A stretch of 64,000 nucleotides of DNA, taken from the NCBI GenBank assembly GCA_038087875.1, contig JAXLNO010001347.1, positions 1-64,000 of the forward strand, in the 5' to 3' direction. The notes under the pieces were generated by a model. It ran no database searches and had not been told where the DNA came from. It saw only the letters and a program-made list of their open reading frames with translations. This document shows positions 12,180 through 33,060 of this stretch, one piece after another. Source of the stretch: Malacoraja senta. Its lineage: Eukaryota. The number at the start of each line of letters is the position of its first letter. Positions within the stretch are counted from its first letter, which is position 1. Position numbers and translations under genes: made by a program.

Positions 12180-12267
12180 ATGAGGCCCAGGTTTTTCTGC
12201 AGCAGTTTGCCAGCTGGTTTGATGTTCGGTGTCTTTGTTTTCCTGCTTCGACCTGTTTCCACACAGA
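12180..12267 (+). CDS. CD4/LAG-3-like receptor: signal-peptide exon (exon starts 12168)
   Basis: Acceptor ttttttcccacag, ATG at 12180, MRPRFFCSSLPAGLMFGVFVFLLRPVSTQ, phase-1 donor A|gtaagt matching the D1 exon. Confidence 0.8.
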
Positions 12268-12429
12268 GTAAGTGCTTTCTCTTCACCGGTCACAATCACG
12301 TTGCTTTTCTTTATCATTCTCCGTGTAAACCCACACCCCATTGTTAATCTCTCTTTCCTCTCCACGTCCCACAAAACCACCCCATCCTTGCTGGAGCTCC
12401 ATTTCTGAGCCTCTCCCATTAGCTCCCTC

Positions 12430-13300
12430 CCTCCCCTTCCCCTGCACCAACATGGTCCTTTTCAAAGTCAGAAATGGCCCCCGGTGAGTAGTGTGACATA
12501 GTTGTCCACGCCATCCTCCCCAACATCTCCCCACCACAGTCCAGGTGGGTGGAACTGCCCTTGACCTATAGATCCAGTCGCAGCCCAAGAACTACCCGCA
12601 ATGTCTTCACTTCATGCTCCAGCACAGTTCCTTCGGGCACTCTCCGACAATCTACCATGGACCCCTCCTATTTCTCATCCTCAAGCTGCCCTTCGGTGAC
12701 ATCAGCTGACGTTTCACCGTTGCTTCCACAAGTTGACTGTGGACACCAGCTTGACCTCGCTAGCACCTCCCTCGACCCCTCCATAGTCTCCACATTCCCA
12801 GACTACACGTGGGACATCCAGGACTGCATGAGCAGAATTCCCCCCCAACTGAACACTTTGAATCCCAAAGCCATTGTCTTCAGTCCCACCACAACCCCTT
12901 TCTCCAGCCAGCAATTCCATTCCATTCAAATCCCAGAATATTTGGGGGTCAGACTGGTGATTCCGTGGCAGCAAACCAAACTCCAGGATGGTGTGTTGCC
13001 TCCCTGGTGCCAGGGTCCAGGATGTCTCCCAGCAGCTGTGGGACATTCTCAAGGACGAAGGTGAACAGCCAGAAGGCGGTGGGCACTTTGGCACAAATGG
13101 GATGGGTAGGAAAAGGGATGAGGTCTGATAGTTTCCCTACCACTGACATGAGTCACACTACATCAACAACTCTCCAACCCTTCCACAAACTCACCTGTGG
13201 CCAGAGAACACACACAGATCTTTATCAAGGCTCGCTGGGCTCGTCATCTCCAGATTCCTCCCGGGGTCATGTGTTAGTGAAGGTAGGAATAGGAAGAAAG
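12430..13300 (+). mobile_element. Degenerate L2-clade LINE fragments
   Basis: HQLDLASTSLDPSIVS...DIQDCMSR...QLN matches the L2 RT thumb region; rearranged and decayed. Confidence 0.6.
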
Positions 13301-13499
13301 GACAGATGAATGTATGGCTCAGGACTTGGTGCAGGGGGCAGAGATTCAGATTTAGATCTTTCTGCCATTGGCATCTCTTCTGGGGCAGACGTCACCTCTA
13401 CAAGAGGGATAGATTGTATCTGAAATGGAGGGGACCAATATGTTTGCAGGGAGGTGCACTAGTGTTACAAAGAGGGCTAAACTGGAGAGGCAGGGGGGT

Positions 13500-16235
13500 G
13501 ATGGGGTGGAGATGAAGATAAGTAATTCTCAAAGGAAGGACAGGCAGAGGGAGGTGAATTTATATAGTGAAACTGATGGGTGGAGGTATGTTCATTTCAA
13601 TGCAAGGAGTATTGTGGGCAATGTAGATGAACTTAGAGCCCAGATCGCTGTTGGGGACTATGATGTTGTGGTCATTGTGGAAATATGGTTGTGACAGGGA
13701 CATGACTAGCAGCTCAATGTTCTGTGTTTCTATGGGAAAAAGATGGGGGAATTGCTCTATTAATCAGGGAAAATATCTTGTTGGCACTCAGAGTGGAGAC
13801 TCTGGATGGTTTGTCCATTGAGGTGATATGGGTAGAGCAATGTGAAAATAAGAAAGGTGCAAGCAATTCAACGGAATTGTATCAGAGGTCCCCCAAGAGT
13901 GAGCAGGAAATAGAGGAACAGATGTGGACACAGATTACTGAAAGTTTACACAAATGGATGTCTTGGGGGGTGACTAATGGTATATCCAATAGGATGTTTT
14001 GTAACAGTTGTGAATAGTGCAACGTGAGAAAGGAATCCAAAATGGACCTTGTGTTGGGAAATGAGTCTGGCCAAGTGACTGATGTTTTAGTGAAAGAGTA
14101 TTTTGGAGACAGTGAATACAACTCCATAAGTTTTAAGATTGGTTTCAATAGGGATAAGTCTGTTCTGTGCGACAAGACATTAATTTGAGTAAGGCAAATG
14201 ACACCATTATTAGGCAGGAGCTTGGTAAGGTAGACTCAGAGCAGTTGTTATTAAGTTACTCCAAGTCTGAGATTGAGAATTGTCTGAAGGTCAGTTGATC
14301 CAAACTCAAGACCGGCAAGTTCCAGTAAGGAGGAGAGATAAGGCTGGCAAAGTAAGGGAACCTGAGATGACCAAATAAATTTGTAAATTTGGTCAAAAAT
14401 AGAAAGGAAACACATGCAAGGTTCAAGAATATGATAGCAGAGAGGGCCATTGAGGAATATAAAGCAAGGAGGAAAGAACTCAAGCGGGCGATTAGAAGGG
14501 AGAAAATAGGCCACAAAATGGCTATGGCGATTTGGAGTAAAGAAAGTTCCAAGGCTTCTTATACTTACATTACAATCAAGATGGTAGACAAGGAGAAGGT
14601 AAACAAGGATAAATGAAGGAAACTGAAACTGGAGATAGGGGTTGTAGGTGAGGTGTCAGATAAATCCAGGGATGAGAGGAGCAAGGGAAAAGGAAACAAA
14701 TGAAATAAAATAAAATATGTCAGTAAAAAGGTGGGGTGGATTGTTTGGCGATTTGTTGCCTGAAAGTCAAGAATTCAATGTTCATACCATTAAGTTGTCA
14801 GATACCCAAGAGAAATATGAAGTGAGATTTCTTCAGTTTGCATGTGGCCTCACTGGCAATGGAGGAGGCCAAGGACAGAAAGATCAGTTTGGGAATGGGA
14901 GTTAAAATGGTTTATTTGTTTAGAGAGAGAATTCAGCGAATTAAAGAACTGTGAGTCACATGTCAACGGTAGGAAACATTTGGAAAGGATTCTTTGGGAT
15001 AGAATTGACTCCCATTTGGAACAAAATAGATGAGGGGATTAAAGACAGTAGGCATGACTTTTACGTGGCATTGTCTACTGTGATTTTAGTAAGGCACTTG
15101 GTAAAGTCCCCCATGATAGACTGATGCTGAAGATTAATAAGCATGGGATAAACATTGAATTGTTTGTCAGGATTCAGAATGGGCAGACTAGAAAACAGAG
15201 GAAAAGGCAATATTCAGGCAGGAAATCTGTGACCAGTGGAGTTCTATATGGCTCTGCCAGGACCACTGTCGGTCATGATTTATACAATGAATTTAAATGT
15301 AGATGGGTTGGTTAGTACATTTACAGATGAGAACAAGATTGCTGCACTGTGAACAACGCTGTCAAAGTATCAAAGTATGTTGTAAAGTAATGAATGGGAT
15401 ATAGACCAGCTACAGAAATGGGTGGACAAATGACAGATCAAGTTTAATCCAAGCATCTGTGAGGTGTTGCACTTTGGGAGGTTGAATATAAGGGGAAGAT
15501 ATACAATTAACGGCAAGGCCCTTAACAACATTGATGTACAGAGGGACCTTGGGATCCAAGTCCCGAACTCTCTGAAAATGGTAATACAGGTAGATAGAGT
15601 GGCAAAGAAGGCAGATGGCATGCCTTTGGTCGGATCATTGGGTATAAGACTCAGGAAGTCAGGATGTGATGCAGCTTTGTAGGACTTTGGTTAGGCCGGA
15701 TTTCAAGCATTGCATGCAGTTCTGGATGCCCCAAAAAGATGCAGAGGCTTTGGAGACAGGGCTGAGAAGGTTTACAAGAATTATGCCTGTGTTACTGGAT
15801 ATTAGCTACAGGGAGAGGTTGAATAGACTTGGATTGTTTTCTCTGGAATGTTTGACATTGAAGTGAGGCTTGATAGAATTCTACCAAATTATGAGCGGCA
15901 AGGTCAATGTAGACAGTCAGAATCTTTTCCCCAGGATGGAAATATCAAATACAAGAGGGCATGAGGGGCTTTTAGGTGAGAGAGGCAAAGTGTGAAGGAG
16001 ATGTGAAGGACAAGTATTTTACAGTGGTGAGTGGCTGGAACATGCTGCTGGTGGTGATGGAGGGAGATGTGTGAATGGGATTTAAGAGACTTTTGGATAG
16101 GCACATGGACATGCAGGGAATGGAGAGATATGGATTATGTGTAGGCAGATAAGAATTGGTCGTGGCATTATGCTCGACACAGACTTTGTGGGCCGAGGGG
16201 CTTGTTCCTGTGCTGAACTGTTCTATGTTGTAAAT
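13500..16235 (+). mobile_element. Old, heavily mutated CR1 LINE (EN to 3' tail) in the leader-D1 intron
   Basis: FNARSIVGNVDELRAQ, LCRTLVRPDFKHCMQFW, LHFGRLN fragments and a CR1-like 3'UTR. Confidence 0.75.
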
Positions 16236-16634
16236 CACTGTGGAACGAGGAGCAGGCAGGGAGGCAGGAGCATGTTTATACTGTTCCAGGTCTGTCCGAC
16301 AAGGGCCGGGGATGCGGTGTGTACAGGATCGGCCTGATCTCCACCCACATCAGGAAACCCCGTCACAGGGAACACCGGCTGGAGACCCGACACAAACGCC
16401 CTTCCACCTCCGTCTTTCTCCCACTCACTCTTCTCATGTCATGAAGTATCCCTGGATTAGGCCAGGTTATTCCAGCCAGCCATCTATTCACAAACTGTGT
16501 CCGTCTCACTGGAGGTTCTGTGGGAGATCAAAACATTCTGGAAATAAATGAAATTCAAAATTAATAATTACAGACATGGAGTGGAGGAAATGTGCTTAAA
16601 ATGTTAATTCCTACATTTTTCCTATTTCCAACAG

Positions 16635-16976
16635 AAATCAGAAATCAGATTTATTTCTTGGATAATGGAGGCGACATTGTGTTAAAAGGACCGGACAATC
16701 CTGGGAGTGACACTGTTGTCTGGGAATGGGAACCACACTCAGGGCCGGGAAAACAGACAGTGGTAATTCTCCGCGTCCAGGGCAAGGGCATGTGGAGCAG
16801 ACAGTGGGGCGATGGCTGGGGAAACGCAGACAAGAACCAGGAGGTGGATGTGGATGACCGTACTGTTAATCTGGCAATAAAAAAACCCAGATTTAAATGG
16901 TCAGGATTGTTCACTTTGACCGAAACACATCCGAGGAACCAGATCCTGAAACGATATGAAATATATGGGATCAAAG
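16635..16976 (+). CDS. CD4/LAG-3-like receptor: D1 exon (V-like Ig domain lacking cysteines)
   Basis: ttccaacag| ... G|gtgagt, 342 nt, phase 1-1, open; IVLKGP..VVWEW..VNLAIK..SGLFTL..KRYEIYGIK strand pattern. Confidence 0.88.
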
Positions 16977-17863
16977 GTGAGTGGGCGAGACACGGATCAA
17001 CAATATGTTTCTCTGTAAATAATGTCACGTGTAATGATGAAATATGGCGGGAATTGTGAGACTTCTTCCACCCGATGAATCTCCCAATGAAACAATTGGG
17101 GGAAAGATTTTTCTTCATTGATTCTGTGGGCCTGGGGTGAGATTGTCGAGTGACACTGCTGCTCAATGTTACCCAGTGAACCAGGTCCATGCCTCACTTG
17201 GTTGTGATCTCAGAGGAAGTCCTTCATCTGTGGAACTTACACTGGTGGGAGAGTTCCCACCTTGAGGGCGGTTGGGGGAGACATGACAGGGACAAATGGA
17301 CAAACGTATCAATCCAGTTACATCTAAACGTTGTTTGCATTCACTGGTCAGAGTGTTGCCGGTTGCACCAGCAGTGTCACGGTGAACAGCCGGCATTTAC
17401 CTGTGTGAATATGTACAGCTTCAGGACTTCCACCCATGCGTTTCACAACGAGGAATTCCACAACTTGCTGACAGTTCTTGCGGTGAATCTGCCAGCGCTC
17501 CCCTTCACTTCTCCATGTGGAGACCAGGACTAGAGCAGGAATATGCTGATATTCCCCGACTCTGGAACTGGGAAAACTGCTCCCAGATCCGGTGCCTGCA
17601 GGGGTGGAGACTCTTCAGGAATCAAAACTAATCGTTATTGTAGAATTAAGACTCTTTCATGATAAAAAAAATGAAATATTCAATATTAATAAATGTGTTT
17701 ACTTCTAGAAGTTGGTGCCACTCAGAACCATTCCAACATTCCTGGGATGGCAGGACTTTCATATGAAGAAAGACTGGATAGACTCGGCTTGTACTCGCTA
17801 GAATTTAGAAGATTGAGGGGGCATCTTATAGAAACTTACAAAATTCTTAAGGGGTTGGACAGG

Positions 17864-20800
17864 ATAGAAACATAGAAATTAGGTGCATGAGTAGGCCATT
17901 CGGCCCTTCGAGCCTGCACCGCCATTCAATATGATCATGGCTGATCATCCAACTCAGTATCCCGTACCTGCCTTCTCTCCATACCCTCTGATCCCTTTAG
18001 CCACAAGGGCCGCATCTAGCTCCCTCTTAAATATAGCCAATGAACTGGCCTCGACTACCCTCTGTGGCAGAGAGTTCCAGAGATTCACCACTCTCTGTGT
18101 GAAAAAAGTTCTTCTCATCTCGGTTTTAAAGGATTTCCCCATTATCCTTAAGCTGTGACCCCTTGTCCTGGACTTCCCCAACATCGGGAGCAATCTTCCT
18201 GCATCTAGCCTGTCCAACCCCTTAAGAATTTTGTAAGTTTCTATAAGATCCCCTCTCAATCTCCTAAATTCTAGAGAGTATAAACCAAGTCTATCCAGTC
18301 TTTCTTCATAAGACAGTCCTGACATCCCAGGAATCAGTCTGGTGAACCTTCTCTGCACTCCCTCTATGGCAATAATGTCCTTCCTCAGATTTGGAGACCA
18401 AAACTGTACGCAATACACCAAGACCCTGTACAACTGCAGTAGAACCTCCCTGCTCCTATACTCAAATCCTTTTGCTATGAAAGCTAACATACCATTCGCT
18501 TTCTTCACTGCCTGCTGCACCTGCATGCCTACTTTCAATGACTGGTGTACCATGACACCCAGGTCTCGCTGCATCTCCCCTTTTCCTAGTCGGCCACCAT
18601 TTAGAAAATAGTCTGCTTTCCTGTTTTTGCCACCAAAATGGATAACCTCACATTTATCCACATTATACTGCATCTGCCAAACATTTGCCCACTCACCCAG
18701 CCTATCCAAGTCACCTTGCAGTCTCCTAGCATCATCCTCACAGCTAACACTGCCCCCCAGCTTAGTGTCATCCGCAAACTTGGAGATATTGCCTTCAATT
18801 CCCTCATCCAGGTCATTAATATATATTGTAAATAGCTGGGGTCCCAGCACTGAGCCTTGCGGTACCCCACTAGTCACTGCCTGCCATTGTGAAAAGGACC
18901 CGTTTACTCCTACTCTTTGCTTCCTGTTTGCCAGCCAGTTTTCTATCCACATCAATACTGAACCCCCAATGCCATGTGCTTTAAGTTTGTATACTAATCT
19001 CTTATTTGGGACCTTGTCGAAAGTCTTCTGGAAGTCCAGATACACCACATCCACTGGTTCTCCCCTATCCACGCTACTAGTTACATCCTCGAAAAATTCT
19101 ATAAGATTCGTCAGACACGATTTACCTTTCGTAAATCCATGCTGACTTTGTCCAATGATTTCACCACTTTCCAAATGTGCTGCTATCCCATCTTTAATAA
19201 CTGACTCTAGCAGTTTCCCCACTACCGATGTTAGACTAACTGGTCTGTAATTCCCCGTTTTCTCTCTCCCTCCCTTCTTAAAAAGTGGGGTTACGTTTGC
19301 TACCCGCCAATCCTCAGGAACTACTCCAGAATCTAAAGAATTTTGAAAGATTATTACTAATGCATCCACTATTTCTGGAGCTACTTCCTTAAGTACTCTG
19401 GGATGCAGCCTATCTGGCCCTGGGGATTTATCGGCCTTTAATCCATTCAATTTACCCAAAACCACTTCCCGACTAACCTGGATTTCACTCAATTCCTCCA
19501 ACTCCTTTTACCCGCGGTCCCCTGCTATTTCCGGCAGATTATTTATGTCTTCCTTAGTGAAGACGGAACCAAAGTAGTTATTCAATTGGTCCGCCATATC
19601 CTTGTTCCCCATGATCAACTCACCTGTTTCTGACTGCAAGGGACCTACATTTGTTTTAACTAATCTCTTTCTTTTTACATATTTATAAAAAATTTTGCAG
19701 TCAGTTTTTATGTTCCCTGCCAGTTTTCTTTCATAATCTATTTTTCCTTTCCTAATTAAGCCCTTTGTCCTCCTCTGCTGGTCTCTGAATTTCTCCCAGT
19801 CCTCTGGTATGCTGCTTTTTCTGGCTAATTTGTACGCATCATCTTTCGCTTTGATACCATCCCTGATTTCCCTTGTTATCCACGGATGCACTACATTCCC
19901 TGATTTATTCTTTTGCCAAACTGGGATGAACAATTTTTGTAGTTCATCCATGCAGTCTTTAAATGTCTTCCATTGCATGTCCACCGTCAACCCTTTTAGA
20001 ATTAATTGCCAGTCAATCATGGCCAATTCATGTCTCATACCCTCAAAGTTACCTTTCTTTAAGTTCAGAAGCATTGTTTCTGAATTAACAATGTCACTCT
20101 CCATCCTAATGAAGAACTCAACCATATTATGGTCACTCTTGCCCAAGGGGGCACGTACAACAAGACTGCTAACTAACCCTTCCTCATTACTCAATACCCA
20201 GTCTAAAATAGCCTGCTCTCTCGTTGGTTCCTCTACATGTTGATTTAGATAACTATCCCGCATACATTCCAAGAAATCCTCTTCCTCAGCACCCCTGCCA
20301 ATTTGATTCACCCAATCTATATGTAGATTGAAGTCACCCATTATAACTGTTTTGCCTTTGTCGCACGCATTTCTAATTTCCTGTTTGATACCATCTCCAA
20401 CTTCACTACTACTGTTAGGTGGCCTGTACACAACACCCACCAGCGTTTTCTGCCCCTTAGTGTTTCGCAGCTCTACCCATACCGATTCCACATCCTCGAA
20501 CCTAATGTCCTTCCTTTCCATTGCGTTAATCTCCGCTCTAATCATCAATGCTACCCCACCTCCTTTTCCTTTCTCTCTATCCCTCCGGAATATTGAATAT
20601 CCCTGGATGTTCAGCTCCCAGCCTTGGTCACCCTGGAGCCATGTCTCCGTGATCCCAACTATTTCATAGTCATTAATAGCTATCTGCACATTCAACTCAT
20701 CCACCTTATTACGAATGCTCCTTGCATTGAGACACAAAGCCTTCAGGCTTGTTTTTACAACACTCTTACCCCTTATACAATTATGTTGAAAAGTGGCCCT

Positions 20801-20976
20801 TTTTGATTTTTGCCCTGGTTTTGTCTGTCTTCCACTTTTACTTTTCACCTTGCTACCTATTGCTTCTACCCTCATTTTACACTCCTCTGTCTCTACGCTC
20901 ACACATTTAAGAAACCCTTTCCCTTTAACTCCATCCTCCACTATCCCATTCGACACCCCACCCCCCTTATTCAGTT
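17864..20976 (-). mobile_element. Young CR1 LINE, near-intact ORF2 (APE+RT), nested in a + strand CR1 3' fragment (17738-17863 and 20977-21324)
   Basis: ORFs 19508..20956 and 17954..19501 share one frame, separated by a single TAA; 15-nt deletion of RPHLE. The host reads ttggacagg|...|atgcaggaag. Confidence 0.95.
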
Positions 20977-22122
20977 ATGCAGGAAGATTATTCCCGATGT
21001 TGGGGAAGTCCAGAACTAGGGGTCACAGTTTAAGGATAAGAGGGAAGTCTTTTAAGACCGAGATGAGAAAATCATTTTTTACACAGAGAGTGGTGAATCT
21101 GTGGAATTCTCTGCCACAGAAGGTAATTGACGCCAGTTCATTGGCTATATTTAAGAGGGAGTTAGATGTGGCCCTTGTGGCTAAAGGGATCAGGGGGTAT
21201 GGAGAGAAGGCAGGGATGGGATACTGAGTTGGATGATCAGCCATGATCATATCGAATGGCGGTGCAGGCTCGAAGGGCCGAATGGCCTATTCCTGCACCT
21301 ATTTTCTATGTTTCTAAGTTTCTAACAGCTTGGGAGCTTTAGCAGATGATGAACAAGGCCTTTGCCTCCTGTAGATAATTCTCCATAGGTGTAAAGGGAT
21401 TGGGATTTGTTCATTGCTCTAACGTTTGCCGACATACAGTGAATGAGGTCGGATCCAACTACTTTGATCTTCATGTTTTCCCCAGCGAAATCTCATTTGC
21501 AGAATATTCTATGCTGCAGGAGTACATGCTGAGGGACACACTGAAGATCAGTGCAGACAAAGCAAAGGCATTGTGGAATAGAACTACAGTCCATGGACCT
21601 TCTGCCACCAGTCCCCGCCGAGCCAAATCTAATGTATAAACCTCTGAAACACTTGAATTGGTATAATCTCATGATGCAGCATGAGTGTCAAGAGTGTTAT
21701 GTACACAAAATGTGTGAACACTGTCAAAGTGAGGAACAATAACACTATGTCTGTGTAGTCTGGACAATATCAAATTCAGATTTAGATTCATATTAGTTCA
21801 TTGTCATATACATTTGGGTAAAACACATTCATTGTTCAGATAAAGTAAATTATAATAAAAGGTACATTAAAAAATGCAACAAAAGCAAAATAGCAGAATG
21901 GTGCAGAGATTGCAGTGCAGTCTGAAGTAATGCAACATAAAACTAACGTTTATGAAAATGCCCCAGGGGATAATGAGTGTTTGTGGCTCTGAGCTTGGAC
22001 TAGCTGGAGTTTAGAAGAATGAGGGGCGGGTCTAGGTTTTCAGTTGAGGTGAGATTGAGGCCATTCATTGGACTTGTACAAACCACTACTCACTCTGAAT
22101 CTCATTGATCTGTTTTTCACAG

Positions 22123-22389
22123 TTGAGGCAAGTCCACGGATCATTCTGCTGGGCAGTGACGTCACACTCAGCTGCACCATCTCCAGACTCTCAGATACAG
22201 TCAGTCTTCACTGGAGACCCATGGACTCATCCCAGCAGAACAGGAACAACACTGATCAGATCCGCCTGGATAACACGGTCTATCTGATGGTTCAACACGT
22301 TACAGTGGAGGATGGGAAGTATGTGTGTGATGTGCAGGAAAACGGAAACATTGTTCACACAAGTAACGGAGATTTTACTGTAGACAACT
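22123..22389 (+). CDS. CD4/LAG-3-like receptor: D2 exon (C2-type Ig)
   Basis: tttttcacag| ... T|gtgagt, 267 nt, phase 1-1; DVTLSCTIS..LHW..DGKYVCDV. Confidence 0.95.
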
Positions 22390-23811: not shown

Positions 23812-24147
23812 ATTTATATAATGGGAAATACACACTTTACCGCTCCAGCACAGATCACAGTGAACTTCACCTGGTTTGTTCTGGTTATATCCTTTCCCGT
23901 ACTGAGGGGATCTGGAAATCACGTCGCCTTCAACAACAGCAGAAAGTAATAGCATCTGCAAGACGTTCTCAGCCCATCAATGTCAATGGGACCGACTTCG
24001 GGAATCGACTGGTGACCTCTGGGAAACCCTTCGATGGCAAGGATTTCAGTGTGAGGATTGTCCCCGTTTTGTTTCAAGATGCCGGAGTTTACACATGTTT
24101 TCTGGATTTAAATCCATTTCCCACCATTGATCTAATCACAGTGAAAG
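23812..24147 (+). CDS. CD4/LAG-3-like receptor: D3 exon (V-set Ig)
   Basis: ctctgatacag| ... G|gtagga, 336 nt, phase 1-1; ELHLVCSG..GIW..FGNRL..DFSVRI..QDAGVYTC. Confidence 0.95.
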
Positions 24148-24225
24148 GTAGGAGTCAGAATGATGCCACTGAGTTTACTGATGAACTTATTGTTTAAAAT
24201 GTAAACAACCTGCTTGTTTCCACAG

Positions 24226-24486
24226 TCACAGCTGAACCGTCTGATGCAGTGACTGAGGGAGACACCGTTACCCTGACCTGCTCTGTGTCTCACGTCATTG
24301 AGTCAATGAGACTGGTTTGGATCAATGGCGATGGCAAAAGTGTTGCAGAAAAGACACTGACCAGGAAAGAGAAATCACAGAGTCTGGTTATTCAGAAAGC
24401 TGAGAGAGGCAGAGGGAACTGGATATGTGGTTTGTTTCATCAAGACCTGCCCCGGCTTTTTGTCCCGTACTATCAGGAGCCCCGTG
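24226..24486 (+). CDS. CD4/LAG-3-like receptor: D4 exon (C2-type Ig with WxC)
   Basis: gtttccacag| ... G|gtaagt, 261 nt, after a 78-nt intron; EGDTVTLTCSV..LVW..GNWICGL (CD4/LAG-3 WxC hallmark). Confidence 0.95.
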
Positions 24487-24879
24487 GTAAGTGATAAGGG
24501 TTGTTCTTCATATTTAGAGTCATGATTGAGTTTTGATGTCGCTTATTGATCCTGAAATTTGAGTGGAATATTTTCTTCCAGTTTGAGTGGTCTAACTCTG
24601 TTATGATCAATGAATTCTCAAATTTCAAATAACACTCCCCGAAACCCACTCCCCCCCCCCCTTCATTGTGCATGCATTTATCCCACCACCCAGTTATCCT
24701 ATTCTCTTCCCTTCCTCTTTCAACTCATTTCCCACCCCTTCCAATTGCAGAGTTTTCCTTTTATGTTCTTGCTCCACTTCCACCCATATCCCTCCCTCTG
24801 TTACTGATCTGACTGTAGATCAGTCAGTATTAGTTCACCTGATCTATGTCATGTTTTACTGCTTGCCACTGTGTACTCA

Positions 24880-25680
24880 AACAGTCATCTGGTTGAACCA
24901 GGACTTATATAAAGGATTTCAAGATTATGTAAAAGGATACACTATAGAAACGAAACAGAAATGGGAATTGGAAATGAATATTATTATTACTGACGAAATG
25001 TGGGAAAAGACATGTATTTTGGGTCATAAGTTAACAAACAGCCCCACCTGGAGGGAGTTTGAATGGAAAACTAGAATGAGAGTATTTAAAACTCCTCTTA
25101 TGTTAGCAAGATACAGCAACACTTCAGATTTATGCTGGAGACAATGCGGGAAGATTGGCGATCATACCTATATTTTTGGGATTGTCCCAAATTGTATCAA
25201 TATTAGAGAGACATTCAGGCAGAGATCAAGCTAATCTTGGGGGTGGATCTACCTCTGGAGCCGGCATGCTTCATACTAGGAGAGATTCCAGAAAATATAG
25301 ATACCAAAACTCAGACATACTTGCTTGGGGTGTTGCTGTTGATTGCAAAGAAGATGATTACAGTGTCATGGAGAAATGTAAAGCCACCAAATGTTCAACA
25401 GTGGAGGGAAAGACTGAAAAGTGTATATATGATGGAAAGTATAACAGCTAAACTCCAGTTAAGGACTGATGCTTTCAACATTATGTGGACACCGGTATTA
25501 CTACAACTGCCAAGACTGATTAAGGACACGATTTCTCCATAGCCCCAGTGGAGGGGAGGAGTTCGACTGGTATTGTATATGTGTATTTGGAGCCATATGT
25601 ACAGACTTGATTGTGACTGTGTATAAGTACATAGATAGGGGCGATCAATGACAAAATAAGTTCTTCTAGTGGCATACAAG
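24880..25680 (+). mobile_element. L1-clade LINE 3' fragment in the D4-TM intron
   Basis: KWELEMNI..WEK..CWRQCGKIGDHTYIF and LLLIAKKMITVSW...W are ORF2 C-terminal Cys-domain motifs. Confidence 0.85.
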
Positions 25681-26379
25681 TGTCTGGTTTAACATAACGG
25701 GTGACTATATATTAAGTAGGATTAAATATGATGAGCTTGCTTGGGTGCCTGTGAATGTGATGCTTCTGCCACAGAACTCTAGGATGATCTGATGTGATGC
25801 TGACAGCTGCTGTGTGATTTGTATATCTTGTTTGTATGTGTACTTTGTCTTGTTAATAAATGTTGAGGGCAAAACAAAATGTAGGTGCTGGCTCGAGGGG
25901 CTGAATGGCCTACTCCTGCACCTATTGTCTATTGTCAAAGATCCTTTCTTTGAATCTGACAATGTTTTATTCATCATAAAACATGAACTCACTTCTTTCC
26001 CTTTCCACGGATACTGCTCAAACGGCTGAGTATTTCTAACCTTTACAGTTCATGTGCTCCTGGTTAGAGAGGATTGAAGCTGGAGGGCAATATCCACTCT
26101 GTTGTCAGTAGTGCTCATTCAACCATCGTTCCAGGCTTAGACTATGATAGACATTTGTCCACTGTACAGTGGGAAGTATCACAGCTGAATCAGCTACTTT
26201 ATCTACCAACCATCAGCTCCCATCTCCTGCCTGAGAAATGTCAGCTGATTGTAACCAAGAAATAGAAACTTGTGTGAATGTTTACAGTCTCTAACTGATG
26301 GCTACTGAGGCAAGTTGTGGTTCTCTGATCTTTCTGAGTAAGGTCAATTAATCTGGGGGAAAAAAGACACAATGTGCTG

Positions 26380-26540
26380 GAGTAACTCAACGGGTCAGGC
26401 GGAATCTCTGGAGAACATGGATAGGTGAGGTTTTGGGTCGGGACTACTTCAGACTAAAGGGCTGCAACCCGAAATGTCACCTGCCTAACCTGCTGAGTTT
26501 CTCCAACACTTTGTGTCTTTTATTGGTAAACTCTCATCTG
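26380..26540. repeat. Head-to-head Penelope terminal-repeat derivative
   Basis: gctggagtaactca...gacc / cccgaaatgtcacc...gctgagtttctcca inverted pair similar to 36641-36740. Confidence 0.65.
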
Positions 26541-26695
26541 CAGTACCTTGTGTCTCAGTTAATCTGGATCACAAGTTAAACTCAAGACTTCTGATCTAAA
26601 TTAGTCCGTGTGGTTAATGCCTGGTCTTTGGGGGAGCTTTTGAATGATGTCCATTTATTCTACAAATGTGAACTCTGTGTTTATTATTTTGACAG

Positions 26696-26803
26696 AGAAT
26701 TACACTTTTATATACATCATTGTTGGAATTATCGGGAGTCTGGCTGTTCTCATCGTCATTGTACTGGCAGTGGTGTGGTGTCAAAGAAGGCGCAAGCCTA
26801 CAG
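26696..26803 (+). CDS. CD4/LAG-3-like receptor: transmembrane exon
   Basis: ttttgacag| ... G|gtaaaa, 108 nt, phase 1-1; ENYTFIYIIVGIIGSLAVLIVIVLAVVWCQRRRKPT. Confidence 0.92.
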
Positions 26804-27512
26804 GTAAAATACATGAAGACATCCTTAATGCAGCACAGATTCCCCAAATTATCAATGACAATGTTATCTTTGTTACAAGGAGAAAAGAACAATATGATTT
26901 GGATAAGAAAAGTATCTGTTTGTGCTTATGTTGTTGAGAAATTGATTTCAGACTTTTTGTGGTCAATTAAAGCATTATTTATGCAATGTGGATTGTCTAC
27001 CTGTCTACCTGCGTTGCCATGAGGAGTCTGCTGTATGATTTCAGGTGCTGTTCTGCAATGATCTGACCACGTGGTGATTGTGTCACCATCCCCTGTGTAA
27101 ACCATTATCAAATAAACATGCCAGAAGTTGAAGTATAGCTAGTGTAATCATGTAGAAAATATGGTCTCCAATTTGCCCTCGATATGTTCCTATTTACTGA
27201 GGGATAAATATTGGGCAGGAAACCAGGAGACCAAGGTATCTCCACTGCACTTTGGTGGTTCAAACTTAAAGTGAAAACTTTCCCTTGTGTACCATCCTAA
27301 TATGGTCATAATTTAGGGAACACTGTGTTTCCATGGACTCTGATTTTATACACATGGTCTTGTCCCACCATTAAATGTCTCTGACATACATCTGAAGCCA
27401 TGTTCCTGGTCGATCTCATTATTATTGGGGTACAGTTTAAACACAGGATTGCTGCTTCTTTAAAATCAAGCCGGATTAAAGTCTTAATCAGAAAATAATA
27501 ATTATTTTCCAG

Positions 27513-27567
27513 AAATTAATGTGACCCCAGTACCTGAGATGAGCCATGTTGCTGAATATATGTCTGA
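27513..27567 (+). CDS. CD4/LAG-3-like receptor: candidate cytoplasmic exon 1 (alternative donor at 27588 includes an in-frame TAG)
   Basis: ttattttccag| phase 1, EINVTPVPEMSHVAEYMS; both donors (GA|gtagga, AG|gtaaat) are phase 2. Confidence 0.5.
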
Positions 27568-28059
27568 GTAGGAAGACAAAGCAAGAAGGTAAATAGATGA
27601 CTCAGTCAATGAATCTCTAGTTGTAGAGGTGTTGTATTTGATGAAGCAACCTATTTCACATTTCACAGTTTTGTAACAAGAATGTGAGGAAGGGAACCTC
27701 AAGCACACAAACTAATTGATCAATTCAACAGTCTCTCTTGTGTCAATTCACCCCTCAGTCCCAATCTTCCTCATCCAACTGCAGGTCTTACTCTGCATTG
27801 GTCAATTGACTAATTTTCACTGGACTATCATGGTCAACCCATGAATGTTGAGACATCACCATGAACAACATATTCACACTCCTAATTTATTGTTGATCCT
27901 GATTAACAGCTTGGTTAGTGGCTCTCTAAAGAATGGACAACACTTGCCCTTTCAAAAGTCACCATCCCTTTCACAAAATATCATCTAGCATTTAATGCCT
28001 CCAATTCACTTTGCCACTAGTTCAGATTTTATTCTAAAGTGAAAATAACAACAACATTT

Positions 28060-28265
28060 CAGAATGGTTTGAGCAACATTAATAAATGGTGGAGAGGTGA
28101 TGTTTCGGATCGAGACCCTTCTTTTGACTCTGAAGAAGGGTCACGACCCGAAACATCACCTATACATGTCCTCCAGAGATGCTGCCTGACCTGCAGAGGT
28201 ACTCCAGCACTTTGTGTCCCTTTGTGTATTAACCAGCATCTGCAGTTCTTTGTTTCCACCTTAGA
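28060..28265. repeat. Head-to-head Penelope terminal-repeat derivative with degenerate hammerhead core
   Basis: aggtgatgtttcgg...cttc / ctgaagaagggtcacgacccgaaacatcacct palindromic junction. Confidence 0.7.
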
Positions 28266-28269
28266 CAGA

Positions 28270-28995
28270 ATCAGATTCAGATTTTATTCGCCAAGTATGT
28301 TTTGCAACATACGAGGAATTTCACTGGCCAGGTCAGTCATACAATTAAAAAGCAACAGACACAAAAACACATTTTAACATGAACATCCACCACAGTGACT
28401 CCTACACATTCCTCACTGTGATGGAAGGTGAAATAAAGTTCAAGTCCTTCACTTGTGTTCTTCCTCGGTCGGGGGCCTCGAGCCTCCGTGGACGGGATGA
28501 TCTTGACTCCCGTAGCCGGCGGTGTTCGGGCCGTCCGCGTCGAGGCGTTCAGCTCCCGCATCGGGGGGATGTCAGCTCCCCCACGCCGGGCGATCAAACC
28601 TCGCATCGGGGCTGGTTGAACCTTCTGCGGCGTTGGAGCTCCCGACTCAGCCTCTCCTGAGACTGCGAGCCATTGATGGTAAGTCCGCAGGTCGCGGTGG
28701 GAGCGATCCCAGGCAAGGGATCCGCTCCGATGTTAAGTCCGCTCCCCGCGGTGGGGCTCACGACAGTCCGGGGCGGCTTCCAGCTCCATCGATGGTAGGC
28801 AGCAGAGCCCGAAGAATGTGATCCGAAAAATGATCACATCTCTGGGAAGGTGAGAAACTGAAAAAAAGTTTCCCCCGACCCCCCCCACCCTCCCCCACAT
28901 AAAACAAACTGAAGTACATTAAATCAAACTTTTAACAAACACTAAAATAACAAAAAGATGAATAAACGAACAGACTGCCGGCAGGGCTGCCATCA
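28270..28995 (-). repeat. CpG-rich dispersed repeat (probably a LINE-mobilised non-autonomous element)
   Basis: Right end is the reverse complement of the same style of 5' block as 33335-33470 (ggcagc...T-rich...G-run...gggggaaac). Confidence 0.55.
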
Positions 28996-29168
28996 CCCTG
29001 GTGGTCAAATGGTGGACAGTATTGTTTTTGCCAGAATTTAGACCACATTTCTGATGAATCTGATGAACAGAGAAATCTTTCTTGAAAAATCTGAGGGAAC
29101 CTTTCAATAAATCAGACATTGCTCATGTTTTAATGAGAAAAATATCAGTTCCTTACCTTATTCCACAG

Positions 29169-29200
29169 TCTGGATCAATTGTATTCCACTGTGTTCCACT
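29169..29200 (+). CDS. CD4/LAG-3-like receptor: candidate cytoplasmic exon 2 (LDQLYSTVFH)
   Basis: Strong acceptor ttccttaccttattccacag, 32 nt, phase 2-1, links the candidate exon 1 to the 32019 exon in frame. Confidence 0.5.
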
Positions 29201-29902
29201 GTAAAGGGATCGATTGTGTTCATATATTGTCTTTCTGCTGATGCAACAAAAGCTTTTCCCTGAACCTCGGCACACATGACAATAAACTAAACTGTACCTC
29301 AGCTGATCATATCTCCCCATATTCCTTGATCTTAGTCCACATATGACTGGTCTCTAGTTTGTGTTTCGCAGTCTTTTTTTCCACTAACCTGTGGTCTTTG
29401 TAATTTATGCTTCATTTATGTGTTGTGTTGCCTTAGTCAAAATGCATCTGATGCTGCTGCAGGCAATATTTTCATTGTACATGTACCTCGCCATTGTTGT
29501 GTATCTGTCAATAAATTCAACAACTACTAAAATGTACTGAATGATTTGGCTCCAGCCAAATGTGTGGTAGAGAATGTAACCGATTCTTTGTTCTCCTCAT
29601 CTTCATCCTTATTGTCTCTTGTCTTCAACCTTTACCCCTGGTCATGGTCTCCCTCAACAGGGAACATCTTCCTCCATCCAGACTGGTCTACCTGTTGGAA
29701 TTTTCTATGTTTCCATGAGAACCATTGCCATTCTTCTAAACTCCACAAGCCAAATTAACTCAAATTCTCTTTGTAATTTCCACCATCCCAGGAAGAAGTC
29801 AAAACAAGGAGGTTAGGAGATGTGACTTTTCATGGATGGGTTTTTCAAACTGCTGGAGGTACTCTATGGGTCGAGCAGCATCTGTGGAGGGAAGGCGATG
29901 AT

Positions 29903-30480
29903 CAATAGGCAATAGACAATAGACAATAGGTGCAGAAGTAGGCCATTTGGCCCTTCGTGCAAGCACCGCCATTCAATGTGATCATGGCTGATCATCCCCA
30001 ATCAGTACCCTGTTCTTGCCTTCTCCCATCCCCCGACTCTCCTATCTTTAAGAGCCCTATCTAGCTCTCTCTTGAAAGCATCCAGAGAACCAGCCTCCAC
30101 CGCCCTCTGAGGCAGAGAATTCCACAGACTCACAACTCTCTGTGAGAAAAAGTGTTTCCTCGTCTCCGTTCTAAATGGCTTACTCCTTATTCTTAAACTG
30201 TGGCCCTGGTTCTGGTCTCCCCCAACATCGGGAACATGTTTTCTGCCTCTAGCGTGTCCAGACCCTTAATAATCTTATATAATCTGCTAAACCCCAGAGT
30301 GTACAAGCCCAGCTGCTCCATTCTCTCAGCATATGACAGTCCCGCATCCCGGGAATTAACCATGTAAACTTACGCTGCCCTCCCTCAATAGCAAGAATGT
30401 CCTTCCTCAAATTAGGGGACCAAAACTGCACACAATACCCCAGGTGTGGTCTCACTAGGGCTCTGTACAACTGCAGAAGG
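29903..30480 (-). mobile_element. CR1 LINE 3' fragment
   Basis: (caataga)n tail, 3'UTR, ORF LLQLYRALVRPHLGYCVQFWSP. Confidence 0.9.
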
Positions 30481-32018
30481 ATCAACGTTTCGTATCATTG
30501 ACTTAAATCATCCTTTTTGAAATACAAATAAATTCTTTGTTTCCAACTTATTTCCACACAGAGGAAGGTATTCATTATGGATCCATCTCCTTCCAGCCAA
30601 AAGCAACTGGTGGTAAAATGACTTTATTTAAATATGTTTTAATCTTTTATCACAGTGAGGATTATTGGCACTGAGTAGTCTGAAACCCTGCTGTCTTTGG
30701 CCACTTTACAACAGCATCAGGCATTCCTGGGATAAAGTCCCTCACTCTGTCCGTGGAAATGAAGTGGGACAGTCAGCTGAGGCTCAGTTAGGAGCCGAAC
30801 CTTCTGTGGGTGGGTTCAGCCTCCCCAGCCTTCTCCGAGTGTGTTCTGGTTCCCTAAACTACAGGGAGTGTGGTCTGGTCCCCTAACCTACTCTAAGTGG
30901 GTTCTGGTCCCCTAGCCTACTCTGAATGGGTACAATAGCCACTCCAGAGATCCAACCAGTGACATCCAGGCTGCTGTTACAACACTGTTGTGCATTGTCG
31001 TTGGTGATGAGAAGTGAAACCAAGACACCATTTATGTCCATCTGAAGAACATTCTTCTGCACAACTCCTGACTGAGCTACAAGTGATCAGCACAATCTTC
31101 CTTGAATTATAAATTTTTGATATTGATTAGTAGGACTGGATGTTACAATCCCTAAGTTTCTTCACCACAACTGACACCCGATATTCTTGGGGGTGACCAC
31201 GAGGTGATTTTGCTACCAATCAGACACATCTTCAGTTGTGTACCTCAAAGTCACTGGGTGTTTCGGCCTTTTTATCACAAGACACCCTCAGTCAAGGCAG
31301 GCCCACCGCAGGGTGATCAGCCCTGGGTGTGTGTCTTATGGTTAGCCTCTAGATGGTCACGTGGCAGCCCAGACAGCATCTATTCTCTTCAGCCACAGCC
31401 AGTGACTGCTCCATTCTGCTTTTTTTACTTCCATCTTCCTCTTTACCGCTGACTGTGGCTGGTTGGGCTCTGGACTCGTGTCCGTTGGTGGGACAGTACT
31501 TGGTTGAGCTTCACCTGGGGTGCTGATACCCTGTGGACTGCGGTGGTTAACCTGCCACTGGGCTTCACTCAACTGATTTGGCCTACCTCTTAGAAGGTAA
31601 TGGTCAATGTGAGGCCCCACACCAAGCTCTCCCAGGCACTCTTCCCTGCCCTGGTGGATCTTGAGACCCTTCTCTGATGTTATCTTTTCCCAGCCACAGA
31701 TGCAGCTTCGTAGCTTATGTCCTGCCCGGGCTGCTGCTCTGTCAATTGCTGTGCTAGTTCACTTATTCATAGTCGATTCCTTCCGTAGCAATATAAGGGT
31801 GTCTTGTTCATGCTGACCATTCCTGCAGCTCACTGTAAATGCAGAGGTATGAGCATACAGATGACAGATGGGTTTTCTGGAATTCAATGTCTTGTTGATC
31901 TACTGTCAGGAAGAGCAAAATGTAGTAAGCTTTAGACTTTTATATTCCATTTGTCGTTTCCTTTGTCAACATAATCCACCAGTGTCATTTTTAATTGTGA
32001 TGTTTGCATTGATTACAG

Positions 32019-32062
32019 GCAGCAGCGATAATACACTGTCCTCCAATCAAACATCAGGCACT
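32019..32062 (+). CDS. CD4/LAG-3-like receptor: penultimate cytoplasmic exon (SSDNTLSSNQTSGT)
   Basis: gattacag| ... |gtaagt, 44 nt, phase 1-0. Confidence 0.68.
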
Positions 32063-32194
32063 GTAAGTATATTGATTCTTGTTGATGAAATCCCAGATCG
32101 TACAAGTATGAATTAAAGCTGTAATCTGTTTACTGATCTAAACAGCGACAACAGCAACGGTCTTAAATACAATTGGTATTTCTTCCTCTTTCAG

Positions 32195-32257
32195 AACCTT
32201 GTTTCTTCAAAGGAAGATGAGTCATCTGTCATCTATGCTGAAACAGTAAAAACATAA
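32195..32257 (+). CDS. CD4/LAG-3-like receptor: terminal coding exon (NLVSSKEDESSVIYAETVKT*)
   Basis: Acceptor tttcttcctctttcag, phase 0, ITIM-like VIYAET, TAA at 32255-32257. Confidence 0.72.
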   Translation, partial: NLVSSKEDESSVIYAETVKT

Positions 32258-32685
32258 ACATGAATACTGTGAAGAGAGTGGAAAGTAAAGGCTTGGACTT
32301 TGACAAGTGCAACGTTGCAATGTTTGGAATTGAATTTTTTACTTCATCTATATTACTAAAACTAAGATATTGACCACTTTCTGACTTTCTGTTTCGTGAT
32401 TTCTGAAAGAACGCCGCCACTTACGGACGTGATTTTTGGCCACCTCGCTCACAGTCCCCCTCCGCTGAGCTGGACTGGAGGCTTTTTCCCATCGATGAAA
32501 AATCAGAGAGTTGTTAATGTTTTAGTATTGGTTGTGAGTGTGTGTGTGTATGTCTGTGTGTGTGTTTTCAGAAATTATATTGGTTGTAAAGTGTTTGCAA
32601 ATTTGGAGACTTTAAACGTTTGAATCATTCGGTTTTCACACTATGTTTACCATGTTCTGAAGTTACTTAGCATTTTAGTCTTGGT

Positions 32686-32918: not shown

Positions 32919-33060
32919 ATAGGGGGGTTGCACGCAAGGTCACCGGGTCAAAGGGCATGATGCATGGAGCCGCTCAATCCATCTGGAGGACATCGCAGCT
33001 TCCGGTATATGTTGTTAATACACGAAACACGTACTTTCCTACCTCTTAAAAACCGCCAAA

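Follow-up and report, generated by a model that had tools for sequence, protein, structure and literature searches.

A CD4/LAG-3-fold receptor gene of the skate Malacoraja senta as a probable inhibitory-type member of a large paired Ig receptor family of fishes

Does a skate gene with four Ig domains, a CD4/LAG-3-like ectodomain and a tyrosine-motif tail represent a third branch of the CD4/LAG-3 family, as a preliminary description of this locus had proposed? CD4 and LAG-3 are usually regarded as a pair that stands alone, G6F being only distantly related to them. The window analyzed here is a stretch of 64,000 nucleotides of Malacoraja senta (assembly GCA_038087875.1, contig JAXLNO010001347.1, positions 1-64,000, forward strand). 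We conclude, with a probability of roughly 75%, that the ten-exon gene encodes a type I membrane receptor of the inhibitory type and that it belongs to a large, unnamed family of paired Ig receptors found in cartilaginous and basal ray-finned fishes. On this reading the gene is a paired receptor with the CD4/LAG-3 fold, and one copy of a family rather than a lone third branch. The features of the gene are listed in Table 1.

Table 1. Exons and other features of the receptor gene in the 64-kb window
Feature	Position	Strand	Length (nt)	Description
Exon 1	12180..12267	+	88	Start codon and signal peptide MRPRFFCSSLPAGLMFGVFVFLLRPVSTQ; ends in phase 1
Exon 2 (D1)	16635..16976	+	342	V-like, no cysteine; model pLDDT 89
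Exon 3 (D2)	22123..22389	+	267	Ig domain; Pfam ig 4.8e-6
Exon 4 (D3)	23812..24147	+	336	V-set 2.8e-4 (Pfam); LVC...IW...DAGVYTC
D3-D4 intron	24148-24225	+	78	
Exon 5 (D4)	24226..24486	+	261	C2-type; Pfam ig 1.7e-6; LTC...VW...NWIC
Exon 6 (stalk and TM)	26696..26803	+	108	Uncharged TM helix, stop-transfer; NYTFIYIIVGIIGSLAVLIVIVLAVVWCQRRRKPT
Exon 7 (tail)	27513..27588	+	76	EINVTPVPEMSHVAEYMS...; 78 nt in relatives
Exon 8 (ITIM)	30562..30612	+		(E)EGIHYGSISFQPKATG; phase 1 to phase 1
Exon 9 (tail)	32019..32062	+		(G)SSDNTLSSNQTSGT; covered by X1 contig
Exon 10 (tail)	32195..32257	+		NLVSSKEDESSVIYAETVKT and stop TAA (32255-32257); ITIM-like VxYxxT motif

All six ectodomain/TM exons are open, their core residues are conserved, and AG acceptors and GT donors are intact throughout, with every junction in phase 1. 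These phase 1 joins, the short intron between D3 and D4 and the WxC of D4 (GNWICG) had all been described correctly. The alignment of exon 1 with the annotated Leucoraja erinacea protein P0092 begins at residue 1, and residues 1-430 are 78% identical to that protein; the locus is moreover colinear with an Amblyraja radiata gene at 90-94% nucleotide identity. Together, these two observations rule out a chance chain of open reading frames for the ectodomain. Nucleotide identity to A. radiata is 92.5% for the D2 exon, 85% for D3, where many in-frame indels occur, and only 70% for D1. D1 has WEW in strand C and SGLFTLTET where YxC is expected; taken alone, exon 2 gave no Pfam match and, in phmmer searches of PDB, no match at E ≤ 10. 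The D2 pattern is canonical (LSC...HW...YVC), without WxC. D3 aligns with the D3 of family members, and alone it produced only weak generic V-set matches in PDB, the best of them MXRA8. In P0071 and P0099, members of the inhibitory type, the TM exon shares 63-70% identity with exon 6. The cysteine-less D1, the YVC of D2 and a TG deletion in exon 7 are features on which the preliminary description was silent.

A search with D1 alone found 40 representative proteins, and the family as a whole comprises at least 140 proteins from sharks, rays, chimaera, sturgeons, paddlefish, bowfin and eel. When 140 family proteins were typed by tail and TM, 43 had an ITIM-type tail, 37 had a lysine in the TM followed by a short tail, and none had both. 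The Lys-TM members read ...GYL(L/F)VKLAV... in the TM. The two types are interleaved on the family tree and form pairs with near-identical ectodomains, for example P0070 and P0009, whose end branches measure 0.017 and 0.015. Members with eight Ig domains also belong to the family. In the D3-D4 family alignment C191 is invariant and W189 is present in at least 90% of members, while D2 reads GKYVCDV, with Y181 and C183 nearly invariant. Cx(C/H) is absent from the family tails, in which a LYSN-type exon lies upstream of the EYMS exon. Neither a Lys-TM exon nor an HLYSN-type exon was found within the 64-kb window. Apart from the receptor gene, the window contains repeats and an MHC class I-like alpha3 exon, and no CD4/LAG-3 neighbor genes were found in it. 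Protein searches with two family profiles returned family members and otherwise only a few unrelated IgSF proteins. Nearly all family names are "uncharacterized", the exceptions being "CD276 antigen homolog" (four), "obscurin-like" (two), "VCAM1-like" (one) and "CEACAM5-like" (one); no member was found that is named CD4 or LAG-3, and a literature search by motif and gene identifiers returned no paper naming the family. The proposed third branch gives way to one copy within a multigene ITIM/Lys-TM family that extends from chimaera to eel.

In exon 7 of the assembly 2 bp (TG) are missing after 27564, so that a TAG at 27569-27571 comes into frame; SRKTKQE can still be read in the +1 frame. The TG is present in the A. 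radiata ortholog, in the spliced contig of a relative (run X1) and in most contigs of X10 and X11, two runs with contigs identical or nearly so to the window. Over X10 and X11 the TG is found in approximately 80% of the summed contig depth and is lacking in approximately 20%. With the family's usual splicing, the deletion means that translation ends after ...AEYMSE, upstream of the ITIM. Because about a fifth of the X10/X11 depth also lacks the TG, the deletion is perhaps a real allele, and it may be a null or truncating one. Were exon 7, which runs from phase 1 to phase 1, to be skipped, the frame would be kept and the ITIM would again be read.

The downstream tail exons are open and 92-96% conserved. 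The protein encoded by exon 8 (EEGIHYGSISFQPKATG) is a 100% match to A. radiata P0035. A 4-bp (AGAT) deletion shifts its acceptor 6 nt downstream of the A. radiata position without loss of frame; X10 and X11 are polymorphic for this indel. Searches for RNA runs of M. senta found none, and the evidence on splicing is a single contig in the RNA-like run X1, which is from a related organism. This contig of 277 nt (depth 9.26) carries the TG at 27564 and next covers 30606 and 32051; one piece ends at 30612, and from letter 160 of the contig the alignment starts exactly at 32195. The contig indicates spliced exons 7-8-9-10, the pieces being linked by their coordinates and equal depths and by no printed joint.

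A different tail had been put forward in the preliminary description, with a short exon 7 ending at the donor GA|GTAGGA (27567/8) and spliced to a 32-nt exon at 29169-29200 (LDQLYSTVFH), by which the frame would be rescued and the stop bypassed. That path is open and has GT/AG sites, its donor GT being created by the deletion itself. However, the homologous exon 7 of relatives continues to the donor at 27589, and the 32-nt exon is conserved no better than the surrounding intron, has its tyrosine replaced by cysteine in A. radiata and is missing from the ortholog's gene model. The depth of X1 is zero at 29170, the LYSN-type exon of family tails precedes the EYMS exon and does not follow it, and the conserved ITIM exon would be skipped. 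We therefore consider this tail very improbable. The last two tail exons of the earlier model, exons 9 and 10, agree with ours.

When intact, the tail contains three tyrosine motifs: the ITSM-like AEYMSV (TEYMSV in A. radiata), the canonical ITIM IHYGSI and the C-terminal VIYAET, which carries T at +3 and so falls outside the canonical ITIM. IHYGSI conforms to (S/I/V/L)xYxx(I/V/L) behind an uncharged TM; in the assembly it is out of reach, with the frameshift upstream. Up to three tyrosine motifs had also been listed before, among which EYMS and VIYAET are present; the LYSTV exon is unsupported, and the canonical ITIM in exon 8 had been overlooked. The suggested inhibitory signaling through tyrosine motifs gains from the canonical I-H-Y-G-S-I of the family tail, but in the assembly the frameshift stops translation before it. 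As previously stated, the tail contains neither Cx(C/H) nor (F/Y)xxL(D/E), and Cx(C/H) is absent in any reading of the tail. YxN and YxxL-(6-12)-YxxL are absent as well, the tail tyrosines being those of EYMS, HYGS and IYAE.

AlphaFold (AF2) models of D1-D2 and D3-D4 were built separately on P0092, the 78% identical relative, and not on the window protein. Their pLDDT values are 86 and 89. In both models a long strand leads from V into C2, strands 102-117 and 115-127 being predicted to cross the domain border. In two-domain superpositions both D1-D2 and D3-D4 fitted only CD4 and LAG-3, with LY6G6F as an additional match for D1-D2, in line with the CD4/LAG-3-like ectodomain first suggested for the gene. 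Rat CD4 D3-D4 (1cid) gave Z scores of 15.2 and 15.3 with an rmsd of 2.7 Å over 169-170 of 177 residues, CD4 D1-D2 gave Z 13.3-13.6, and LAG-3 D3-D4 gave Z 13.3 at 25% identity. Foldseek searches against PDB and Swiss-Prot models left the ranking unchanged and added LY6G6F for D1-D2 (TM 0.62-0.67 for the LY6G6F models); G6F was not among the top 30 matches to D3-D4. Two-domain TM-scores were 0.57-0.72 for CD4 and approximately 0.4 for CEACAM, SLAM and B7. Each V-C2 unit is thus predicted to be a rigid rod with a continuous strand running from V into C2, a geometry that, judged from the models, would be common only to CD4, LAG-3 and G6F among known structures.

Sequence comparisons appear to give a modest signal toward CD4/LAG-3. 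The family profile searched against PDB sequences had LAG-3 as its first match (9e-16), LAG-3 also topped the D3-D4 profile, and the WxC of D4 aligns with the WxC of LAG-3 D2 and D4. Per-module profile scores for CD4/LAG-3 were similar to those for PD-L1, and the D1-D2 profile ranked NCAM and Ig CL first, not CD4, LAG-3 or CEACAM. The CD4-specific Pfam families gave no match to the window exons or their relatives. The domain order V-C2-V-C2 was obtained from Pfam on exons and relatives and from the secondary structure of the models. Aligned against each other by hhalign, D1-D2 and D3-D4 matched over 177 columns (probability 98%, E 8e-14); they are internal duplicates of a V-C2 unit.

We weighed the hypothesis that the gene is the true skate ortholog of CD4 or LAG-3, or a single-copy third paralog, in which a tyrosine tail replaced the Lck or FxxL motif. 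The gene shares with CD4 and LAG-3 a type I, four-Ig V-C2-V-C2 ectodomain derived from V-C2 duplication, a separate exon for each domain with phase 1 junctions, WxC in D4 and, in the models, V-C2 rods in which strand G of V would be continuous with strand A of C2. CD4 and LAG-3 are also its best two-domain structural matches (Z 13-15), and LAG-3 is the top PDB profile match. Nevertheless, the gene groups with over 100 paralogs and orthologs in a multigene family apart from these two, which includes 8-Ig members and Lys-TM partners of activating type and in which no protein is annotated as CD4 or LAG-3. Unlike CD4 and LAG-3, the skate receptor has YxC and not WxC in D2 and no disulfide, indeed no cysteine, in D1. 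Its tail lacks the Cx(C/H) Lck clasp of CD4 and the (F/Y)xxL(D/E) of LAG-3, and is spread over four small exons where LAG-3 has a single one. Shark CD4 and LAG-3 have been described apart, with CxH and FPAL(D/E) tails and at their own locus (PMC10768021). This reading is largely refuted, and we regard it as extremely improbable. Alternatively, the CD4/LAG-3 likeness could be convergent or generic, and the family could really belong to the CEACAM, SLAM/CD2 or V-C B7 groups. A D1 without a disulfide is typical of CEACAM N domains and SLAM/CD2 V domains, and the D1 structure alone matches NTB-A, 2B4, CD48 and NITR at Z 13-14.5. In the PDB profile search CEA ranks second and CEACAM1 is colinear from the N-terminus (5e-8); at NCBI one isoform carries the name "CEACAM5-like", and some members are called "CD276 homolog". 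The tail layout, ...xYxxLxF... and then a C-terminal ITIM, presumably recalls those of CEACAM1 and CD33-type Siglecs. Yet none of the CEACAM, SLAM or B7 structures fits across both domains at low rmsd, and no CEACAM was among the top 50 structural (VIA) matches of either model. Furthermore, D3 is a V domain where CEACAM has C2, D2 and D4 have one disulfide each where SLAM C2 domains usually have two, and the high total score of CEA is a sum across seven domains. We consider such convergence quite unlikely.

That this copy makes no functional receptor, as a pseudogene or a null allele, is conceivable but doubtful. The 2-bp deletion places a stop in exon 7 before the ITIM, the TG-less form makes up about one fifth of the X10/X11 depth and is thus probably real, and a LINE lies in intron 2. 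These points are opposed by the intact ectodomain/TM exons, the conserved downstream tail exons and the intact frame in most contigs of the near-identical runs. Even with a truncated tail a membrane-anchored ectodomain remains, and the frame is kept if exon 7 is skipped.

Related receptors with tyrosine-motif tails are already known, as G6F/G6F-like is a third CD4/LAG-3-related lineage of that kind. Ohashi reportedly noted in 2010 that G6F-like resembles CD4/LAG-3. Like the skate gene, G6F encodes a type I Ig-domain receptor with a tyrosine-motif tail; G6F is MHC-encoded, and the skate gene lies 31 kb from the MHC class I-like exon. The family to which the skate gene is assigned is multigene, whereas G6F is single-copy and platelet or thrombocyte specific. 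Four Ig domains are found in fish G6F-like and fewer in mammalian G6F, and their tails carry YxN, plus an ITAM in fish (PMC3528668); the skate tail has neither YxN nor an ITAM.

In its organization the family resembles KIR, LILR, SIRP, CEACAM, CD33-type Siglecs and NITR/LITR. These too form multigene clusters in which near-identical ectodomains are carried either on an uncharged TM with an ITIM tail or on a short-tailed form with a basic residue in the TM, and they show fast-changing membrane-distal domains and frequent truncated alleles. The skate module, a V-C2 rod in the models, differs from those of KIR/LILR (C2-only), SIRP (V-C1), NITR (V plus I) and Siglecs (sialic-acid-binding V). CEACAM has an N-terminal V followed by C2-type A/B domains only, whereas D3 of the skate receptor is V-set, although its D1 is cysteine-less.

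If the gene is indeed an inhibitory-type paired receptor, D1, the membrane-distal V domain and the one most divergent between species, would bind the ligand. Ligand-driven clustering would lead to phosphorylation of the ITIM/ITSM tyrosines by Src-family kinases, and the phosphorylated motifs would recruit SHP-1/SHP-2-type phosphatases. Sister receptors with near-identical ectodomains and a Lys-TM would associate with a DAP12/FcR-gamma-type ITAM adaptor, and their signal would be opposed by the inhibitory form. Unless exon 7 is skipped, the TG-less allele would correspond to a tail-less variant that is non-inhibitory or null.

We know of no NK-type paired receptor system that has been defined in sharks and rays. 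The family is large and old, and it would offer a concrete candidate for one; it would also serve as a new outgroup in tracing how CD4 and LAG-3 arose. A bolder hypothesis, which we hold to be rather unlikely, is that the family is the counterpart of KIR/LILR in cartilaginous and basal ray-finned fishes, with the MHC-binding scaffold of CD4/LAG-3 retained and used in surveying MHC or MHC-like molecules. If this were true, the MHC class I-like gene 31 kb away would be a trace of receptor-ligand co-evolution, and the diversified or swapped V domains (70% nucleotide identity in D1 and 85% in D3 versus 91-96% elsewhere) would be further traces. The CD4/LAG-3/G6F lineage would then have begun as a multigene innate system, with CD4 and LAG-3 as its two tetrapod survivors. 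To this the skate copy adds an indel polymorphism that removes the inhibitory tail, which has a parallel in the variable immune receptor families of mammals.

The six exons proposed for the signal peptide, ectodomain and transmembrane (TM) segment of the receptor gene in the preliminary description were borne out when the model was rebuilt base by base. All six carry the required AG acceptors and GT donors and join in phase 1 throughout, the intron between D3 and D4 measures 78 nt, and D4 reads GNWICG. D1 contains no cysteines and gave no Pfam match, while Pfam assigned generic Ig families to D2 and D4 and a V-set to D3. The TM is uncharged, of the inhibitory kind, and no exon encoding a lysine-containing TM (Lys-TM) was found in the window.

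Positions of the receptor gene exons and of other features in the window
Feature	Position	Strand	Remark
Signal peptide exon	12180-12267	+	88 nt
D1 exon	16635-16976	+	342 nt
LINE-type retroelement, receptor intron 2	17864-21325	-	long
LINE ORF	17954-19501		515 aa, includes reverse transcriptase
LINE ORF	19508-20956		482 aa
D2 exon	22123-22389	+	267 nt
D3 exon	23812-24147	+	336 nt
D4 exon	24226-24486	+	261 nt
Stalk, TM and stop-transfer exon	26696-26803	+	108 nt
Exon 7	27513-27588	+	TG missing after 27564
Stop codon in exon 7	27569-27571	+	TAG
Rejected exon	29169-29200		32 nt
AGAT indel	30557		4 bp
Exon 8 (ITIM exon)	30562-30612	+	set by splice-site analysis
Exon 9	32019-32062	+	
Exon 10	32195-32257	+	
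Microsatellite-rich stretch	32560-32960		
TM-like piece	59162-59239	-	may be part of the class I-like gene
MHC class I-like alpha3 exon	63047-63307	-	C1-set

With D1 as the only query, a full HMMER scan matched 40 representative proteins, and profile searches yielded more than 100 further family members. In the databases they are called "uncharacterized" or "hypothetical", apart from a few automatic labels ("obscurin-like", "CD276 homolog", "VCAM1-like", "CEACAM5-like"); none of the members found is named CD4 or LAG-3, and no publication naming the family was found in the literature. The family occurs in skates, rays and sawfish (Amblyraja, Leucoraja, Rhinoraja, Narcine, Mobula, Hypanus, Hemitrygon, Pristis), in sharks (Scyliorhinus, Carcharodon, Cetorhinus, Rhincodon, Chiloscyllium, Heterodontus, Heptranchias, Pristiophorus, Ginglymostoma), in the chimaera Callorhinchus, and among ray-finned fishes in sturgeons, paddlefish, bowfin and eel. 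The four-domain ectodomain is conserved in full, and many members of the family have eight Ig domains. Identity to the window ectodomain is 78% for the Leucoraja erinacea protein P0092 (residues 1-430), 56% for the Pristiophorus protein P0009 and approximately 26% for sturgeon proteins.

AlphaFold2 was run on family alignments headed by P0092 and gave models with pLDDT 89 and pTM 0.83 for D1-D2, and pLDDT 86 and pTM 0.84 for D3-D4. In each model one long strand crosses from the V into the C2 domain. Foldseek against the PDB placed CD4 D1-D2, rat CD4 D3-D4 and LAG-3 at the top, with TM-scores of 0.56-0.64 for the D3-D4 model and 0.45-0.57 for the D1-D2 model; Fabs and scFvs reached only 0.35-0.43 with an rmsd of at least 12 A. 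Against 550,000 Swiss-Prot models Foldseek matched CD4 and LAG-3, and D1-D2 also matched LY6G6F (TM 0.62-0.67) and rat CD4 D3-D4 (TM 0.72). VIA-align, run without Foldseek against 48,161 representative chains, ranked rat CD4 D3-D4 (1cid) first for both models (Z 15.2 and 15.3), superposing 169-170 of 177 residues at an rmsd of 2.7 A. CD4 D1-D2 came next (Z 13.3-13.6), as did LAG-3 D3-D4 for the D3-D4 model (Z 13.3, 25% identity). Most other high rows were single-domain alignments of about 100 residues, and the two-domain rows among them scored below CD4 and LAG-3 and had a higher rmsd than these, of at least 3.5 A. For these predicted models, the three independent structure searches agree.

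Sequence comparisons were suggestive of kinship with CD4/LAG-3, not decisive. With a profile of 16 family members, human LAG-3 was the top hit of all PDB sequences (9e-16), followed by CEA, a protein of seven Ig domains (2e-12); mouse LAG-3 scored 3e-11. The profile alignment paired the end of the family D3 plus D4 with both D1-D2 and D3-D4 of LAG-3, and covered the V-to-C2 junction, LxC, the strand-C Trp and WxC. When the profile was split, D3-D4 again retrieved LAG-3 first and CD4 at about 2e-7, with PD-L1 scoring as well per module; for D1-D2 the first places went to NCAM and Ig light-chain constant domains. By hhalign the two halves of the ectodomain are related to each other across 177 columns (probability 98%, E 8e-14), in keeping with the duplication put forward for CD4/LAG-3 (PMC10768021).

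Taking the defining features of CD4/LAG-3 from the same source (PMC10768021), we found the V-C2-V-C2 order, the duplicated V-C2 unit, WxC in D4 and, by prediction, rod-like units with a continuous strand. D2 carries an ordinary YVC, not WxC, and the tail has neither Cx(C/H) nor (F/Y)xxL(D/E) and is not the single-exon tail of LAG-3. The gene was therefore not filed as CD4 or LAG-3, and was placed in a separate family on the CD4/LAG-3 scaffold. The CD4/LAG-3-like fold first proposed for it was upheld by Foldseek (PDB and Swiss-Prot) and VIA-align on predicted models, but the proposal of a third branch consisting of one gene was abandoned, since the gene belongs to a large multi-species family. 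A tyrosine-motif relative is already known in G6F/G6F-like, with a YxN tail and, in fish, an ITAM (PMC3528668); both motifs are absent from the window gene. In CEACAM and SLAM/CD2 the first V domain likewise lacks cysteines and the tail is of similar style, but these groups differ from the present family in their two-domain geometry and domain order.

Searching with family tails by tblastn revealed a tail exon missed in the preliminary description, exon 8, whose ITIM-bearing stretch EEGIHYGSISFQPKATG recurs unchanged in the Amblyraja radiata protein P0035. From 22071 onward the window runs colinear with the A. radiata locus L001, with a nucleotide identity of 90-94% that holds for introns as well; L001 is therefore the orthologous locus. 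Exon-by-exon alignment to A. radiata extended exon 7 to a donor at 27589. The A. radiata exon reads EYMSVSRNTKQE; that of the window lacks a TG and reads EYMSE-stop, with SRKTKQE remaining in the +1 frame. With the splicing used by the family, the window allele would stop at ...AEYMSE*; were exon 7 skipped, the frame would stay open across the ITIM and end at the usual stop codon. The 4-bp AGAT deletion shifts the acceptor of exon 8 by 6 nt downstream, leaving the exon in frame. Of the tail as originally drawn, exons 9 and 10 are conserved in A. radiata, but the middle part was wrong: the proposed 32-nt exon is conserved no better than the flanking intron, and its Tyr is a Cys in A. radiata. 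The proposed inhibitory tyrosine signalling was upheld as a prediction: a canonical ITIM exon is present. The window allele is truncated ahead of it. Just downstream of the stop codon lies a microsatellite-rich stretch of (TG)n and GTGAGAGTG-type repeats. Neither AATAAA nor ATTAAA occurs between the stop codon and 34172.

Contigs from sequencing runs X10 and X11 matched the window with few or no differences (0-2 over 136-390 bases in records 11, 17, 21, 23 and 24) and come from the species of the window or one very close to it. Their even coverage of introns marks them as DNA-like runs. The exon 7 TG was present in approximately 80% of their summed depth, including record 17, which is otherwise identical to the window over 27552-27722; AGAT was present in 29-44% of the depth. 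Because each is present or absent among near-window contigs, both indels look polymorphic and appear to segregate in the species. By these depths the exon 7 allele of the window, with its frameshift, is the rarer one, although the missing TG may be an assembly error. Run X1, from another organism and RNA-like by a guessed label only, showed depth here confined to exons, and none at 29170, inside the rejected exon. The alignment of a 277-base X1 contig (depth 9.26) begins exactly at 32195 from contig letter 160. The same depth recurs at 27564 (with TG), at 30606, six letters from the piece end at 30612, and at 32051, and the first 159 letters fit 44 (exon 9) + 51-57 (exon 8) + about 60 (exon 7). 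From the coordinates and equal depths we infer a spliced 7-8-9-10 transcript of an ortholog or close paralog.

A long tail encoded by a conserved series of exons was found in 43 of 140 family proteins. The series reads ...HLYSNxxEIQQMQG, NExPVPETSxxAEY(M/A)(S/T)VxRKxKQEDTE, xIHY(G/A)SIxFQKK, ...SSDTNL and xSKEDDSSVIYAQIAQ, and has a canonical and a C-terminal ITIM. Another 37 of the 140 combine a Lys in the TM (...GYL(L/F)VKLAVALGLI...) with a short tail; none of the 140 has both Lys-TM and long tail. When 37 ectodomains were placed on a maximum-likelihood tree, the two types came out fully interleaved, needing 10-11 changes each, no fewer than with shuffled labels, and some pairs of opposite type have near-identical ectodomains. 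Interleaving together with such pairs is characteristic of paired inhibitory/activating receptors. Isoforms or read-through gene models may account for some of the pairs.

In such a system the membrane-distal V domain would bind the ligand, and the ITIM (IHYGSI), the flanking ITSM-like motif (AEYMSV) and the ITIM-like motif (VIYAET) would be phosphorylated on tyrosine and recruit SH2 phosphatases. The Lys-TM sisters would give the opposite signal through an ITAM adaptor. The window allele would produce a membrane-anchored receptor without inhibitory motifs, or be null.

The V domains are the fast-changing parts and evolve faster than the surrounding introns. Nucleotide identity to the A. radiata ortholog is 70% in the D1 exon and 85% in the D3 exon, compared with 91% in the signal exon, 91-96% in exons other than D1 and D3, and 90-94% in introns. 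The D3 alignment holds 22 gap letters and many in-frame indels, clustered near the B-C loop and strand C, and both copies are open. As a comparison of window 16422-22071 with L001 9557-11783 shows, high-identity (90-94%) colinearity starts only about 50 nt ahead of the D2 exon, so an exchange of the signal-D1 part, including the proposed ligand-binding domain, with that of a paralog is likely. In A. radiata the D1 most similar to that of the window (87% amino acid identity) is encoded by LOC116966233, another gene in the cluster on CM021401.1.

An MHC class I-like alpha3 exon, which reads …LYCTVSGFYPPAIKVSWLQNGQ…YSCHVDHSSLPGGKTIIW, is oriented tail to tail with the receptor gene at a distance of about 31 kb. 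It matched Pfam C1-set at 1e-20 and, in the PDB, 9ch4_A best (2e-32), then MR1 and CD1c; exons for alpha1 and alpha2 would be expected past the end of the window. The LINE in receptor intron 2 is absent from the corresponding A. radiata position, and many related copies occur elsewhere in the window and in L001.
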